Assembly (NCBI RefSeq): GCF_000006765.1
Contig: NC_002516.2
DNA: 64,000 bases
DNA from: Pseudomonas aeruginosa PAO1
GTDB lineage: Bacteria > Pseudomonadota > Gammaproteobacteria > Pseudomonadales > Pseudomonadaceae
Direction: 5' to 3' (one strand)
A program made the translations under genes and the position numbers. Numbering within the stretch: position 1 is the stretch's first letter; each line of letters begins with the position of its first letter. Shown piece by piece: positions 11,918 to 32,868 of the stretch. The notes under the pieces were generated by a model that had not been told where the DNA came from, did no database searches, and saw nothing but the letters and a program-made list of their open reading frames with translations.

Positions 11918-12921
11918 GGCCAGCGCGGCAGCTCGCGGGCGGTCCCCATGGCCACCGGCCGAGCCGGCAATTCGCCCCACTGCCCTTCGCCGTCGCCGGT
12001 GCGCTCCGGGAGCGCGACAGGGGCCGCCGCGGGCGGTGGCGGTGGATTGGCCGCCGATGGTGGCGGGTTCGACTGGCGACGGCGATGCAGCAGGGCGAAA
12101 TGTTCCACCGCATCGATGTCCTCCGCCTCGATCCGCTCGCCGCCGCGCCAGGCCGCATGGGCGCGCGCCGCGCGCAGCCAGACCAGGTCGGCGCGCAGGC
12201 CATCGACAGCCGCCTCGAAGCAGCGTCGAGCGATGCTGTCCAGCGCCGCATCGTCCAAGGGAATCCGCGCCAGCCGCCGGCGCGCCTCGGCGCAACGGCG
12301 GCGCAGGGTGTCCTGCTGGCCTTCCCAGCGTTCGACGAAGGCCTGCGGGTCGGCATCGAAGGCCAGCCGGCGACGGATGATCTCTGCCCGCTCGGCCGGC
12401 GGCGGCTGGGTGTCGAGACGCACGTTGAGGCCGAAACGGTCGAGCAGTTGCGGGCGCAGTTCGCCCTCTTCCGGGTTCATCGTGCCGATCAGCACGAAAC
12501 GCGCCGGATGCCGGTGGGAAATGCCATCGCGCTCGACCAGGTTGACGCCGCTGGCGGCGACGTCGAGCAACAAGTCCACCAGGTGGTCCGGCAGCAGGTT
12601 CACTTCGTCGACGTAGAGCACGCCGCCGTCGGCCTTGGCCAGCACGCCCGGGGAAAACCGCGCGCGACCTTCGCCGAGGGCGGCGTCCAGGTCGAGGCTG
12701 CCGACGATGCGCTCCTCGCTGGCGCCCAGCGGCAGGGTAACGAACTCGCCCGCCGGCAGCAGTTCGGCGACGCCCCGCGCCAGGGTCGACTTGGCCATTC
12801 CGCGCGGCCCCTCGATCAGTACCCCGCCGATCGCCGGATCGACCGCGGCCAGGCACAGCGCCAGCTTCAGTTCGTCGGCGGCGACCACGGCGGACAGGGG
12901 GTAATGCACGGTAGCGCTCAT
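11905..12921 (-). CDS. AAA+ chelatase ATPase subunit (ChlI/CobS-like)
   Basis: Walker [38 protein letters not shown], Pro-rich tail; 338 aa. Confidence 0.92.
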
Positions 12922-13061
12922 GGGGATTCCTGCGGCGGACGGACGGAAATACGGACCGCCAAGTCTATCAGGCCGGCGGCGCCGGTATCGAACCGTGAAA
13001 CAGTCGTTGAACCGGCCGCCTCGCTTGCAGTAAGCTCGGGACTCGTTCACGGGAGAAACCC

Positions 13062-13193
13062 ATGCCGCACACCCGCCATCCGCACCTGCATTCCAGTGCC
13101 TCGCGCCCTGGCTTGTCGTTGCGCGCGCGTGCGCCGCAGGCACCCCGTGCCGCGTATTTCTTCGGGTATTGGTTTAGCCACTCCGGCGCCTGA
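13062..13193 (+). CDS. Putative aromatic amino-acid leader peptide (43 aa)
   Basis: Translated by hand: [52 protein letters not shown] at 13051-13056. Confidence 0.72.
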
Positions 13194-13240
13194 TACCCCA
13201 ACGGCGCCCACGGTATACGGGACGCCTACCCTGCACACGC

Positions 13241-13279
13241 AAACCCCCGGTCGGCTCCCCGACCGGGGGTTTTGTTTTT
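13241..13279 (+). terminator. Attenuator-type intrinsic terminator upstream of DAHP synthase
   Basis: Perfect 14-bp stem AAACCCCCGGTCGG/CCGACCGGGGGTTT, 4-nt loop, followed by TGTTTTT. Confidence 0.85.
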
Positions 13280-13339
13280 CCGGCCCGTTTTTCCGGCCCA
13301 CAAGGCCACAACCACAGACCAACGCACAGGACATCGATC

Positions 13340-13444
13340 ATGACCGCATACCGCTACCGCACTGGCTACCCGCTCAACACCTGGCGATTTAGCGACGGCC
13401 GCCAGCCGCTCGCCAACCCACGACATTGCCGAACACCTCGATAG
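13340..13444 (+). CDS. Second putative leader peptide (34 aa)
   Basis: Translated by hand: MTAYRYRTGYPLNTWRFSDGRQPLANPRHCRTPR. CAGGA RBS upstream. Confidence 0.55.
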   Translation: MTAYRYRTGYPLNTWRFSDGRQPLANPRHCRTPR

Positions 13445-13491
13445 GGCACGACGCGCGCGGGACGCCCGCCGCCAGCCCAGGAAGCCAGACC

Positions 13492-14586
13492 ATGAACTCA
13501 TCCGTATCCGCACTGACCACCCTTTCGCCGAACGTCCAGGCCGTCGCCCTGCCCAGCGCCACCGCCCGTACCGCCCTGGAACGCCTGCCCAGCCCGCTCG
13601 AACTCAAGGCCCGCCAGCCGTTGCCGCTGGAGCTGGCCAGCCAGGTCGCCGCCAGCCGCGACGCCATCCGCGCCATCCTCGACGGCGACGACCCGCGCCT
13701 GCTGGTGGTAGTCGGTCCCTGTTCGATCCACGATCCCCGCTCCGCCCTCGAATACGCCGAACGCCTCGCCGCGCTGAGCGACGAACTCGACGGCCAGTTG
13801 CTCCTGGTGATGCGCGCCTACGTGGAAAAGCCACGCACCACGGTGGGCTGGAAGGGCCTCGCCTACGATCCGCACCTGGATGGCAGCGACGACATGGCCG
13901 CCGGCCTGGCGCTGTCCCGGCAACTGATGCTGGACATGCTGCGCCTCGGCCTGCCGCTGGCCACCGAACTCCTGCAACCGCTGGCCGCCGGCTACTTCGA
14001 CGACCTGCTGAGCTGGGCGGCGATCGGCGCGCGCACCAGCGAATCGCAGATCCACCGCGAGCTGGTCAGCGGCCTCGGCCTGCCGGTGGGCTTCAAGAAC
14101 GGCACCGACGGCGGCGTCGGCATCGCCTGCGACGCGATCCGTTCGGCGGCCCACGGCCACCGCCATTTCGGCCTCGACCCGCACGGTCACCCGGCGCTGA
14201 TCGAGACCCGCGGCAATCCGGACACCCATGTGGTGCTGCGCGGCGGCCGCCACGGTTCGAACTACGGCCCCGAGCAGGTGCAGGCCGTGCGCCAGGCCCT
14301 GGAAAGCCAGGGCATCGCCACGCGGATGATGGTCGATTGCAGTCACGCCAACAGCGGCAAGAACCCGCTGAACCAGCCCGGCGTCCTCGCCAGCGTGCTG
14401 GACCAGCGCCTGGCCGGTGCCAGCGACCTGGTCGGGGTAATGCTGGAAAGCCACCTGTTCGACGGTTGCCAGGCGCTCGGCGGCGAACTGCGCTACGGCG
14501 TCTCGATCACCGACGGCTGCCTCGGCTGGGAAGGCACCGAGCGGATTCTCCGCGACGCCGCCCGGCGGCTCGCCGAGCGGCGCTGA
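13492..14586 (+). CDS. 3-deoxy-7-phosphoheptulonate (DAHP) synthase, type I-alpha
   Basis: VVVGPCSIHD, MRAYVEKPRTTVGWKGL, AIGART, VGFKNGT, MVDCSHANS, SITDGC; AGGAAG RBS; 364 aa. Confidence 0.95.
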   Translation: MNSSVSALTTLSPNVQAVALPSATARTALERLPSPLELKARQPLPLELASQVAASRDAIRAILDGDDPRLLVVVGPCSIHDPRSALEYAERLAALSDELDGQLLLVMRAYVEKPRTTVGWKGLAYDPHLDGSDDMAAGLALSRQLMLDMLRLGLPLATELLQPLAAGYFDDLLSWAAIGARTSESQIHRELVSGLGLPVGFKNGTDGGVGIACDAIRSAAHGHRHFGLDPHGHPALIETRGNPDTHVVLRGGRHGSNYGPEQVQAVRQALESQGIATRMMVDCSHANSGKNPLNQPGVLASVLDQRLAGASDLVGVMLESHLFDGCQALGGELRYGVSITDGCLGWEGTERILRDAARRLAERR

Positions 14587-14614
14587 AAGCGGTGGGAGCG
14601 GCCATGCCGCTCCG

Positions 14615-17600
14615 CTATTCCTCTTCGACGTCCAGCAGCAGGTTCTCCAGGGCCTCGCGATAGGCCCCCGGCTCCTGCCAGAGCCCGCGCCGCTGCGCCT
14701 CCACCAGGCGCTCGGCCATGTCGCGCAAGGCTTGCGGATTGTGCTGGCGGACGAACTCGCGGGTCTCCGCGTCGAGCAGGTAGGCGTCGGCCAGCAGCGC
14801 GTACTGGTGGTCGTCGATCAGCTCGCTGGTGGCATCGAAGGCGCACAGGTAGTCCACCGTCGCCGCCAGTTCGAAGGCGCCCTTGTAGCCGTGGCGCTTC
14901 ATCCCGGCGATCCACTTCGGATTCACCGCCCGCGCCCGCACCACCCGGTTGAGTTCTTCCTTGAGCGTGCGGATGCGCGGGTTGTCCGGCTGGCTGTGGT
15001 CGCCGTGGTAACTGGCCACCGGCGCGCCGCGCAGGGTTTCCACCGCCGCCAGCATGCCGCCCTGGAACTGGTAGTAGTCGTTGGAATCGAGCAGGTCGTG
15101 CTCGCGGTTGTCCTGGTTGTGCAGCACCGCCTGCAGGCGTTCCAGGCGCTGGGCGAAGCGTTCCCGCGCCGGCGTGCCGTCGTCGGCGGCACCGTAGGCG
15201 TAGCCGCCCCAGTTCAGGTAGACCTCGGCAAGGTCGGCGCGGGTCTCCCACAGCCGCTCTTCGATTGCGCCCTGCACGCCGGCGCCGTAGGCACCCGGCT
15301 TGGCGCCGAAGATCCGCCAGCCGGCCTGCCGGCGCGCCTCCGCCGGCGCCGTGCCCTGCGCCTCGAGGCGCTGGCGCTCCAGGCGTACGCGAGCGGCCAG
15401 CGGGTTCAGCTCCTCCGCCTCGTCCAGCTCGGCGACCGCCTGCACCGCCGCATCGAACAGGCGGATCAGGTTGGCGAAGGCGTCGCGGAAGAACCCGGAG
15501 ACCCGCAGCGTCACGTCGACCCGCGGGCGGTCCAGCAGGGAGACCGGGAGGATCTCGAAATCGGCGACGCGCTGGCTGCCGGCCTGCCAGACCGGTCGCA
15601 CGCCGAGCAGGGCCAGGGCCTGGGCGATGTCGTCGCCGCCGGTGCGCATGGTCGCCGTGCCCCACACCGAGAGGCCGAGCTGGCGCAGGTGATCGCCATG
15701 TTCCTGCAGGTGACGCTCGAGCAGCAGGTTGGCCGACTGGAAGCCGATGCGCCAGGCGGTCGGGGTCGGCAGGTTGCGCACGTCCACCGAGAAGAAGTTG
15801 CGTCCGGTGGGCAGCACGTCGAGTCGCCCGCGACTCGGCGCGCCGCTCGGACCGGCCGGTACGAAGCGCCCTTCGAGGGCTGCCAGCAGCCCGTCGATCT
15901 CGGCCCCGCCACAGGCGTCCAGGGTCGGTGCCACCTGTTCGCACAAGCCGCGCAACACCTCGCCGCTGGCACGCCAGGTGGCAGGCGGCGATTCGCCGCC
16001 CAGGCAGCGTTCTATCCAGTGCAACGCCAGCAATTCCAGGCGTTCGCGGGTATCCCCGAGAGTACGCCAGGGCTCCCCGCCCCGCTCTTCCAGGCAGGCA
16101 GGCCGCGCGCCCTGCCAGGCCTCGCCCATGTCGCAGGCCAGCGGATCGAAGCCCAGGCCAAGGTCGTCCGCCAGGCTCTTCAGCAACCCGGCGTTGGCGC
16201 CCTTGCCATCGCCGCGCGGAACCCGCAGCAGCGCCAGCAGGGTATCCAGGCGCAATCGCCCGCTCGGCGACTCGCCGAACACATGCAGGCCGTCGCGGAT
16301 CTGCGACTCCTTCAGGTCGCAGAGATAGGCGTCCAGCTGCGGCAGCCAGCTGTCCGGATCGTCGCTGAGCTGCAAGCCGATCTCGCGGTCGAGACGGTTG
16401 TCGCGCAGGAGGACGAGAATCTCGCCGCGCAACTGTTCGGCGCGGCGCGGGTCGAGCAGCGAGGCATCGTAGAACTCGTCGGCCAGGCGCTCCAGGTCGC
16501 GCAGCGGGCCGTAGCTCTCGGCGCGGGTCAGCGGCGGCATCAGGTGGTCGATGATCACCGCCTGGGTGCGGCGCTTGGCCTGGGCGCCCTCCCCCGGATC
16601 GTTGACGATGAACGGATAGATGTTCGGCAGCGGACCGAGCAACGCGTCCGGCCAGCATTCGGCGGACAGGCCGACTCCCTTGCCCGGCAGCCATTCCAGG
16701 TTACCGTGCTTGCCGACGTGCAGCAGGGCATCGGCGCGGTAGGCGTGGCGCAGCCAGAAGTAGAACGCCAGGTAGCCGTGCGGCGGCACCAGGTCGGGAT
16801 CGTGGTAGACCGCCGCCGGATCGAGCTGATAGCCGCGCGCCGGCTGGATGCCGACGAAGGTCAGGCCATAGCGCAGGCCGGCGACCATCATCCGTCCGTC
16901 GCGGAACATCGGGTCCTGTTGCGGCTCGCCCCAGCGCGCCAGCACCGCCTGGCGATTGCGCTCCGGCAGGCGTGCGAAGCAGGCCAGGTAGTCGTCCAGC
17001 GCCAGGCTCTGGGCGCAGGGCCGTAGGTCGAGATGCTCCAGGTCGTTGCTGACGCCGCCGAGCAACTGGCGGATCAGCTCGGTTCCGCTGGCGGGCAGTC
17101 CGTCGACCGGATAGCCCTGCTGGCGCAGGGCACGAAGGATGTTCAGCGCCGCCGCCGGGGTGTCCAGGCCGACGCCATTGCCGATCCGGCCATCGCGGGT
17201 CGGGTAGTTGGCCAGCACCAGCGCCACCCGTTTTTCCGCGTTTGGCTTGCGCGCCAGCTCGGCCCAGCGCCGCGCCAGTTCGGCGACGAAATCCATGCGC
17301 TCGTCGTCGGCGAGATAGCAGACCACGTCGCTCTCGCTGCGTTCGCTGCGCCAGGCCAGGCCCTTGAAACTGATCGGCCGGGTGACGATGCGCCCGTCCA
17401 GCTCCGGCAGCGCCACGTGCATGGCCAGGTCACGCGGCCCCAGGCCTTGCGGGTTGTCCAGCCAGAGCGGGCGGTTGTCCAGCGAGCAGATCGCCTGCAA
17501 TACCGGCACGTCGCGACGGAACGGACGCAACTCGGGCGCCTCCGGATTGGACTGGGCGAAACCGGTGGTATTGACGATCAGCGCGGCGTCGCTGCGCTCC

Positions 17601-32657: not shown

Positions 32658-32744
32658 GTACTCAAGGACCGCAAGGGTATTCCAAATCTGTTTAAAAAAC
32701 CGCCAGCCCTGTCTGGACGCCCCACGAACATGACCAATACTGAA

Positions 32745-32868
32745 AGGTACTGGCGCGCGGTATCTCCCCCCAAGTACCCAGCCAGTGAAGGTACCGAGGA
32801 ATGCGTACCTTTGTTCCACTCCTAATGGTCTTGACCCGGATTCATCCCCCAGAACCCGGGTTTTTTTT
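32745..32868 (+). ncRNA. rgsA: RgsA (P16) small RNA; 5' end approximate
   Basis: Intergenic position between the PLP enzyme and tatD matches recalled PA2958.1. Hairpins ACTGGC/GCCAGT and AAGGTAC/GTACCTT, terminator ACCCGG..CCGGGT plus T8. Confidence 0.75.

Follow-up and report, generated by a model that had tools for sequence, protein, structure and literature searches.

Small RNA P15 of Pseudomonas aeruginosa as the probable termination product of a Phe/Tyr/Trp leader-peptide attenuator ahead of a DAHP synthase gene

Introduction

The classical his, trp and pheA attenuators share one layout: a promoter, a short open reading frame (ORF) led by a Shine-Dalgarno sequence (SD), cognate codons on one arm of a 1:2 helix, a stop codon near arm 2, and a terminator. 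The entry into the shikimate pathway, catalyzed by 3-deoxy-D-arabino-heptulosonate 7-phosphate (DAHP) synthase, is controlled in Escherichia coli by the TyrR and TrpR repressors. Here we analyze a 64,000-nucleotide (nt) stretch of the Pseudomonas aeruginosa PAO1 genome (NC_002516.2; hereafter the window, whose first letter is position 1) that carries the class I DAHP synthase gene PA2943 (PA14_25980). An earlier note, made from the sequence alone, had read the region upstream of this gene as a candidate ribosome-mediated attenuator responding to Tyr, Phe and Trp.

Several described systems come close to such a design. In Corynebacterium glutamicum, a leader peptide with a Phe-Tyr-Phe run (aroR) precedes the DAHP synthase operon (aroF), and ribosome stalling on it raises transcription (Neshat et al. 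2014, as summarized in PMC11802643); functionally, this is the closest characterized analogue. In P. aeruginosa itself, leader-peptide attenuation by trpL1 and trpL2, upstream of trpE and trpGDC, was shown by codon substitution, and it is sensitive to MiaA, acting through tRNAs that read UNN codons (PMC13434334); the main text of that paper makes no mention of P15, DAHP synthase or PA14_25980 expression. The terminated attenuator RNA rnTrpL of Sinorhizobium meliloti accumulates as a small RNA, and both the RNA and its peptide, peTrpL, act in trans, according to two reports (PMC7968998, PMC7298713). Attenuators have also been predicted before aroF-tyrA in Vibrio, and an effect of tyrosyl-tRNA has been reported for E. 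coli aroF. In the full-text literature, with subscription journals outside our coverage, no paper names P15 or the PA2943 leader a leader-peptide attenuator.

Our analysis indicates that positions 13043-13491 are likely to form a ~450-nt 5' leader of the DAHP synthase gene, the first half of which would be a his/trp-type leader-peptide attenuator, with the known small RNA P15 as its termination product. The core of this idea, a Phe/Tyr/Trp leader peptide, a 1:2 helix and a terminator ahead of a DAHP synthase gene, has strong support from sequence comparisons and from published maps of RNA ends.

Results

A conserved leader peptide with rare aromatic codons

The leader peptide, which we call uORF1 (upstream ORF 1), and the enzyme gene that follows it comprise these elements:

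13051-13055 (+), Shine-Dalgarno sequence GGGAG of uORF1, 6 nt ahead of the ATG
13062..13193 (+), uORF1, leader peptide of 43 codons, stop TGA at 13191-13193
13155..13175 (+), control codons TAT TTC TTC GGG TAT TGG TTT (Y F F G Y W F), residues 32-38 of uORF1
13479-13484 (+), Shine-Dalgarno sequence AGGAAG of the DAHP synthase gene
13492..14586 (+), class I DAHP synthase (PA2943 / PA14_25980), 364 amino acids (aa), from profile matches

The downstream gene had been named as a DAHP synthase before any database search, and the profiles agree: the product matches NCBIfam NF009395 with 501 bits (cut-off 343), TIGR00034 (aroFGH) with 431 bits, and Pfam PF00793, and its MNSS... start is conserved. 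The SD-led ORF of 43 aa is also present as described, with six aromatic codons in seven positions near its end and none elsewhere. Its aromatic residues are confined to positions 32-38, and a six-frame scan for windows with at least six aromatic codons in seven returned this run as the single case in the 64 kb, where composition-preserving block shuffles yield a mean of 0.02 per 64 kb. uORF1 is a real feature and not an artefact.

Using the enzyme as query and one genome per species, we collected 20 orthologue loci (62-73% identity) from Pseudomonas, Stutzerimonas, Ectopseudomonas, Halopseudomonas, Salinicola, Chromohalobacter and Halomonas, plus more distant DAHP synthases; loci are referred to by L numbers. 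Seventeen of the 20 are positive for an Rfam family discussed in the next section, and these together with the window make up the 18 Pseudomonas-type loci to which the counts below refer. In all 18, GGAG(A) stands 5-8 nt before an ATG that is in frame with the aromatic run, and the ORF spans 41-48 codons. The six distinct lengths observed all keep the frame and no in-frame stop occurs, while the other two frames contain 15 stops. Wherever the Rfam family is found, the ORF extends across the 5' boundary of the match and closes with [YF][YF][YF]-G-Y-W-F-S-x-x-x-x-stop (17 loci and the window). The 30 N-terminal codons are essentially unrelated from lineage to lineage and conservation is almost complete in the 12 C-terminal residues, the non-aromatic S-H-W-R-A among them. 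A His-rich N-terminus, which had been pointed out in the earlier note, is real in this strain but is not kept in other species; it is probably irrelevant to function, and we dropped it as a functional feature.

The aromatic run itself is kept, with interchange of Tyr and Phe, in 20/20 orthologue loci. The positions located 5' of helix P1 (described below) swap the two residues (YFF, FYF, FYY, YYF, YYFF, YFFY), and GYWF is kept. Within P. aeruginosa, the run is the same in 15 variants, and the 14 variants of the uORF1 peptide carry 16 substitutions, none of them in YFFGYWF. Codon choice follows a strong preference: Phe and Tyr codons ending in U account for 83 of 99 in the 18 leaders, whereas the DAHP synthase genes next to them have 15 of 188, distributed as follows:

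TTT, 42 in the 18 leaders, 1 in the adjacent enzyme genes
TTC, 11 in the 18 leaders, 85 in the adjacent enzyme genes
TAT, 41 in the 18 leaders, 14 in the adjacent enzyme genes
TAC, 5 in the 18 leaders, 88 in the adjacent enzyme genes

This preference for rare, wobble-read codons extends beyond the helix. The GC content at third codon positions is 0.68 in uORF1 versus 0.90 in the enzyme gene, thus not raised, as expected if selection acts on translation only and not on the amino acid sequence. Gene callers have annotated uORF1 peptides on more than 1000 contigs, always as "hypothetical protein", and a search of Pfam and NCBIfam, leader-peptide families included, matched neither uORF1 nor the second leader ORF described below (uORF2) to any family.

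The leader transcript is the small RNA P15

The transcript and its promoter are placed as follows:

13007..13036 (+), sigma-70-type promoter: -35 box TTGAAC at 13007-13012, 18-nt spacer, -10 box TAAGCT at 13031-13036
13043..13277 (+), P15 RNA, the terminated leader transcript, ~227-235 nt, from the Rfam match and published ends

Rfam family RF00627, "Pseudomonas sRNA P15", matches 13151-13269 (+) over the full model (1-119), with 104.7 bits and E = 1e-21 at a gathering score of 70 bits. The stretch is therefore the known Pseudomonas small RNA (sRNA) P15, which has no assigned function in the papers that we read. The model opens with the aromatic codons, so that ~108 nt at the 5' end of the RNA, among them the SD, the start codon and two-thirds of the ORF, fall outside it. 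Among the 20 orthologue loci, the 17 above threshold score 71.6-136.4 bits, and the match always lies on the enzyme strand, ending 181-289 nt before the enzyme start. Apart from P15, an Rfam scan of 12000-15000 gave nothing meaningful: NsiR1, His_leader and anti-hemB were sub-threshold and touched the terminator only, His_leader with 19 bits on the terminator alone.

P15 was predicted and then confirmed by northern blot, in exponential and stationary phase, as a ~180 nt band plus additional bands, multiple larger ones being seen with several probes (Livny 2006, PMC1524904). The flanking ORFs given in the same paper, of 1014 bp at 101 nt and of 1092 bp at 221 nt, fit the locus in the window exactly. 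From synteny, Livny 2008 guessed that P15 was a riboswitch instead of an sRNA encoded in trans. The supposition that the element was uncharacterised holds in part: the RNA was already known, but no function has been assigned to it and no report that we found calls it an attenuator.

Published end maps agree with both extremities of the transcript. In strain PA14, P15 spans 2270094-2270320 on the minus strand (227 nt), with its 5' end corrected to the transcription start site (TSS; Wurtzel 2012 Table S6), and this 5' end converts to ~13043 in the window, 7 nt past the -10 box. Together with the conservation of the boxes across the 18 loci, where the -35 TTGAA is conserved and the -10 box never varies at T1, A2 and T6, the mapped start supports the promoter TTGAAC-N18-TAAGCT that had been proposed by eye; a stricter consensus promoter scan left 13007-13036 unflagged. 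At the other end, a 2021 3'-end mapping study (3pMap) assigned three significant peaks to P15. The one that is the strongest terminator candidate converts to ~13275-13277, within the U-tract, where 3' ends had been expected (near 13275).

Of the two further peaks, one falls at ~13232-13234, immediately 3' of helix P2, and the other at ~13122-13124, within uORF1; pausing of the polymerase or intermediates of decay may account for them.

Helices P1 and P2 and the terminator

The structural elements of the P15 core, for which Rfam consensus, RNAalifold and pair counts agree, are these:

13164-13172 with 13190-13198 (+), helix P1 (A:B), 5' arm GGGUAUUGG, 3' arm CCUGAUACC(C), from the Rfam structure and RNAalifold
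13203-13209 with 13219-13226 (+), helix P2 (C:D), GGCGCCC with GGGACGCC, from the Rfam structure
13241..13279 (+), intrinsic terminator (E:F), 14-bp stem at 13241-13272 (10 G-C), 4-nt loop, U-tract at 13270-13279, TTTTGTTTTT

The 5' arm of P1 overlies the Gly-Tyr-Trp codons and the stop codon of uORF1 falls within the 3' arm. The pairing of GGGTATT (13164-13170) with GATACCC (13192-13198), anticipated in the earlier note as a 1:2 helix, is part of this Rfam helix. Across the 18 sequences, P1 is paired in 98% of cells, P2 in 92% and the terminator in 99%; overall, 96.8% of cells pair in the three elements, versus 35-57% with the partners slid. The perfect hairpin with its U-tract is present as described, and its distance from the stop codon is 47 nt, not 48. 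Only two compensated pairs were found in the P15 core, both in the terminator, and there is too little variation for real covariation. A pairing between the SD and P3 proposed by RNAalifold (columns 54-57 / 261-264) was discarded as an artefact, the SD columns being out of register.

The neighbouring gene on the other side, a chelatase-like gene on the minus strand starting at 12922, is divergent. In this divergent intergenic location, the terminator has only the short transcript itself to end.

The same design in Halomonadaceae and in distant lineages

The remaining three of the 20 orthologue loci, all from Halomonadaceae (L017, L018, L020), keep the leader peptide and the terminator, and their RNA has diverged. 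Their leader runs are FAFFGYGYWF, FFGFSYWYWF and WQGYGYWF, each followed by a terminator. All three contain overlapping and mutually exclusive helices B:C, C:D, D:E and E:F, with Watson-Crick pairs throughout except for one wobble (in D:E of L017). B:C has 6-8 bp and shows compensatory changes (GGCGUGCC:GGCACGCC versus GGGUGCGC:GCGCACCC), C:D has 6 bp (GAGGCA:UGCCUC versus ACCCUG:CAGGGU) and D:E has 8 bp (GGGUUGCC:GGCAACCC versus GGGCUGCC:GGCAGCUC). Arm B begins 6-7 nt past the last aromatic codon, within the ORF.

Among the more distant DAHP synthase genes, five (L039, L048, L060, L067, L071) are preceded by an aromatic uORF and a terminator of seemingly independent origin, ~100-300 nt upstream of the match. 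The runs read GGYWFF and RYYFF in metagenome-assembled genomes (MAGs) of Pseudomonadales, RYWFF and IFWFGYF in gammaproteobacterial MAGs, and RFYGYYWLF in a Dehalococcoidia MAG; in L039 a gap of ~30 nt separates the terminator from the gene start. The z-score of antiterminator complementarity is negative in 8/8 non-Pseudomonas lineages (L039, -3.3; L067, -2.1). The paralogous DAHP synthase loci of Pseudomonas (L047, L052, L054, L058, L066) have no convincing aromatic leader, with one weak ORF of 13 aa in L052.

Given the compensated helices of Halomonadaceae and the negative z-scores in eight lineages, we take the family to be a true class of attenuators, and the Pseudomonas member to be the same design with an antiterminator that is weaker or differently registered.

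As a separate observation, L039 displays a clear three-state switch, with CUACCUUC:GAAGGUAG, then GCUGCCU:AGGCAGC, and then the terminator.

A second aromatic leader ORF

Alignment of the stretch between the terminator and the enzyme ATG revealed a second aromatic leader ORF, uORF2, absent from the earlier note. This stretch contains:

13340..13444 (+), uORF2, second aromatic leader ORF, 34 aa, MTAYRYRTGYPLNTWRFSDGRQPLANPRHCRTPR
13382-13391 (+), invariant TGGCGATTTA of uORF2 (Trp, rare Arg CGA, Phe UUU)
13430-13436 (+), invariant CGAACA of uORF2 (here CGAACAC)
13457..13469 (+), GC hairpin GCGGG-ACG-CCCGC, located past the uORF2 stop and ahead of the SD of the DAHP synthase gene

uORF2 is found in 18/18 Pseudomonas-type loci (the window, L001-L016 and L019) and in the Halomonadaceae L018 and L020. 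Its conserved traits are an SD of the GAGGA type, 3-5 Tyr codons, the residues W-R-F, and a stop codon 29-50 nt before the enzyme ATG. The stems of the hairpin between uORF2 and the enzyme are compensated in folds and alignments (for example, CGCGG..CCGCG in L003 and L006), and a terminator scan detected no intrinsic terminator after uORF2.

The invariant W-R-F region, CUGGCGAUUU, is complementary to the ribosome-binding region of the enzyme gene more frequently than expected by chance, with a mean z of -1.19 relative to shuffled targets and p<0.05 in 6/20 loci. In L008 the pairing is UGGCGAUUU:AAAUCGCCA, and AAAUCGCCA overlaps the AUG; elsewhere the partner site moves with the lineage, to CGCCAG or GCCAGUC in the interval from SD to AUG. 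uORF2 probably adds a second layer of control. Judging from the complementarity of CUGGCGAUUU, this control may be translational, which we put forward as a hypothesis and as the least certain step of the scheme.

We also observed an insertion of ~48 nt inside uORF2, forming two hairpins (CCGYUCGGG; GCCGCCUCCGAUCGG...GGUGGC), in L001, L002, L004, L005, L008, L009, L011-L014 and L019. These are P. fluorescens/putida-type loci and Chromohalobacter; the insertion is absent in P. aeruginosa, Stutzerimonas and Ectopseudomonas.

Discussion

Proposed mechanism

Two further features enter the discussion of how the leader would work:

13185..13209 (+), proposed alternative helix B:C, GGCGCC at 13185-13190 with GGCGCC at 13203-13208
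13289 (+), 5' end attributed to the mRNA of DAHP synthase, with a 203-nt 5' untranslated region (UTR; Wurtzel 2012 Table S3)

In the mechanism that we propose, scarcity of Phe-, Tyr- or Trp-tRNA would stall the ribosome on 13155-13175, so that it covers arm A. With arm A masked, arm B (13185-13190) would pair with C (13203-13208), and D (13219-13226) would be free to pair with the top of the terminator 5' arm, E, delaying the terminator; RNA polymerase would then go on to transcribe uORF2 and the enzyme gene. If charged tRNA is plentiful, or if translation is lacking, P1, P2 and the terminator would form and P15 would be released.

Constrained folds are consistent with these two states. They were computed on the alignment or on single sequences, cut off ahead of the terminator 3' arm and stripped of the bases that the ribosome covers. 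When the ribosome sits on the Trp codon, they predict B:C (GGCGCC/GGCGCGCC with GGCGCC) and D:E (the P2 3' arm with GG-U-CGGC, the top of the terminator 5' arm); without a ribosome, they predict P1 and P2, with the terminator 5' arm free. Over the 18 sequences, 85% of cells pair in B:C, and 87% in B:C and D:E together. When the D:E register of Halomonadaceae (GGGNNGCC:GGCNNCCC) was sought by eye in Pseudomonas, it gave 3+3 bp only, with a loop that shows no covariation.

Six observations weigh against this mechanism in Pseudomonas. First, B:C and D:E show no covariation or compensatory change in the 18 Pseudomonas-type sequences. Second, the D:E duplex energy, computed between the stop-to-terminator region and the terminator 5' arm plus loop, is no better than that of 300 dinucleotide shuffles, with a mean z of -0.05 in the 18 sequences and of +0.48 in the window. 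Third, the equilibrium pairing of the 5' arm has no state dependence over six modelled ribosome positions. Fourth, the enzyme mRNA has been assigned its own 5' end (in PA14, TSS at 2270074 and ATG at 2269871; Wurtzel 2012 Table S3), which in the window is 10 nt past the U-tract of the terminator, and expression of the gene may therefore be independent of read-through. This 5' end may have arisen by processing of read-through RNA, or it may mark a genuine second start; sequence inspection and a scan of the window revealed no evident promoter-like hexamers upstream of it. Fifth, ~215 nt and uORF2 separate the terminator from the gene, a longer arrangement than in the single-uORF leaders of L039, L048, L060, L067 and L071. 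Sixth, azithromycin, which stalls ribosomes, lowered the 3'-end counts of P15 and of the enzyme together, with no opposite shift, in data where counts were very low.

The mutually exclusive antiterminator for which folding had been suggested as a check thus forms in constrained folds and is convincing in Halomonadaceae, but does not rise above chance level in Pseudomonas, where modelling leaves it compatible with the sequence. The three-amino-acid attenuator first proposed is likely to be right in outline: its leader peptide, control codons, P1 and terminator stand, and support for it is limited by the antiterminator of Pseudomonas and by the separate 5' end at 13289.

A broader scheme can be drawn, which we advance tentatively and consider rather doubtful. 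Across Pseudomonadaceae and Halomonadaceae, the leader would be a two-stage sensor with tandem uORFs, in which uORF1 and the terminator act on transcription, integrating Phe, Tyr and Trp by way of purposely slow codons that end in U, and uORF2 acts on translation. The W-R-F codons of uORF2 would double as an anti-ribosome-binding site, such that a stalled ribosome unmasks the enzyme start, and P15 might also act in trans.

Alternative explanations

P15 could instead be an independent sRNA, trans-acting or of dual function, with the enzyme expressed from its own promoter near 13289 and the terminator just ending the sRNA gene. The classification of the family in Rfam ('Gene', not 'Cis-reg'), the existence of a discrete RNA in both growth phases and the separately mapped 5' end of the enzyme mRNA are all in line with this. 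So is the ability of attenuator RNAs to act in trans, as described for rnTrpL in Sinorhizobium, which makes this reading compatible with an attenuator. Against it stand the strict same-strand synteny with the enzyme in 20/20 orthologue loci from two families, and the nature of what is conserved, namely the SD, the ATG, an open frame and aromatic codons that match the pathway, not a single-stranded seed. Five unrelated lineages (the distant genes listed above) have an analogous uORF and terminator with a much shorter gap to the gene, the region upstream of 13289 offers no evident promoter-like hexamers, and P15 has no occurrence in the main text of an Hfq interactome paper. We consider an independent sRNA unlikely.

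Less probable still is that uORF2 is the main sensor, acting on translation or on Rho-dependent termination in the 203-nt UTR, with uORF1 and the terminator being a largely constitutive, decayed attenuator that sets the basal level. An antiterminator that is weak in Pseudomonas and perfect in Halomonadaceae, the 5' end at 13289, and the conservation of uORF2 in both families with its invariant TGGCGATTTA and CGAACA would be explained in this way. The complementarity of W-R-F to the ribosome-binding region points in the same direction, as does the fraction of early 3' termini in the enzyme gene in the 2021 study, 2.6-50% versus a genome-wide median of <3%, although these 3pMap read counts are very low. 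However, the signal for this pairing is modest, with a partner site that differs by lineage, there is no terminator after uORF2, and the control codons of uORF1 and their rare-codon bias are strictly kept in Pseudomonas; the maintenance of this bias argues for continued selection on sensing.

Finally, we think it very improbable that uORF1 is a functional micro-protein or an arrest peptide, (F/Y)3-GYWFSHWRA, for instance a TnaC-like sensor of free aromatic amino acids and not of tRNA charging: its nearly invariant C-terminus, the conservation of G-Y-W-F in Halomonadaceae even where helix P1 is not kept, and its recovery by gene callers would favour a peptide function, but the residues after the run coincide with the loop and 3' arm of P1, so that RNA constraint explains their conservation in Pseudomonas, they diverge in Halomonadaceae (WFRTGV, WFSPGV, WFTRGA), the free interchange of Tyr and Phe and the rare codons fit a codon sensor better than a fixed peptide, the N-terminus is unconstrained, and no Pfam or NCBIfam family matches.

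Implications

If the attenuator reading is true, a family listed as an orphan sRNA gene since 2006 gains a function and moves to the cis-regulatory leaders, and in Pseudomonas and relatives a single leader peptide senses the charging of all three aromatic tRNAs at the entry of the shikimate pathway. Thirty genes have been reported to tell P. aeruginosa transcriptomes of human infection apart from in vitro ones; PA2943 is one of them, with log2 changes of 3.2 overall and 3.7 in cystic fibrosis sputum. A translation-coupled switch would provide a testable reason for this rise, through aromatic limitation or ribosome stress in the host. It also predicts that mutants in miaA and in other tRNA-modification genes de-repress PA2943, which could explain, as we see it, why metabolites of the shikimate pathway were reported to be raised in such a mutant. 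For the engineering of P. putida, the leader would be an obvious target for deregulated aromatic production.

Other RNA elements in the window

Rfam also identified four further elements in the window, outside this locus:

32663-32859 (+), RF00628, the sRNA RgsA (P16 of the 2006 screen), 186 bits
19611-19801 (-), cobalamin riboswitch, RF00174, 109.5 bits
19860-20009 (+), cobalamin riboswitch, RF00174, 82.6 bits
46603-46870 (+), RF01756, rne-II leader (RNase E 5' UTR element), 262.5 bits

The two cobalamin riboswitches are divergent and lie back to back, in agreement with a published transcription-unit table that lists riboswitch UTRs for PA2946 and PA2945.

Comparison with known systems

The terminated attenuator RNA of S. 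meliloti resembles P15 in being a discrete small RNA; functions in trans have been demonstrated for rnTrpL and its peptide, and P15 is not known to have any. trpL1 and trpL2 operate in the same organism as P15, and every P15 control codon is a UNN codon, like those through which MiaA acts there; unlike P15, they sense Trp only and control the Trp branch.

With the enterobacterial his, trp and pheA attenuators, the P15 leader has in common the layout, and the proposed logic, by which A:B, C:D and E:F would alternate with B:C and D:E, is that of the his leader. It differs from them in that its peptide, of 43 codons versus 14-16, has roughly three times their length and mixes codons for three amino acids, in that the gene controlled encodes the entry enzyme of the common pathway, and in that ~215 nt and uORF2 follow the terminator.

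The aroR-aroF system of C. glutamicum likewise places a leader peptide with an aromatic run ahead of a DAHP synthase. The likeness is functional only, between leaders from different phyla, and we take aroR for an analogue and not a homologue. According to PMC11802643, aroR has no Trp codon, Tyr was reported to be without effect, and there is a single uORF. The Pseudomonas leader, in contrast, combines Tyr, Phe and Trp codons, a multi-hairpin layout of the his type and a second uORF, and this tandem uORF2 is possibly a new variant of leader-peptide attenuation.

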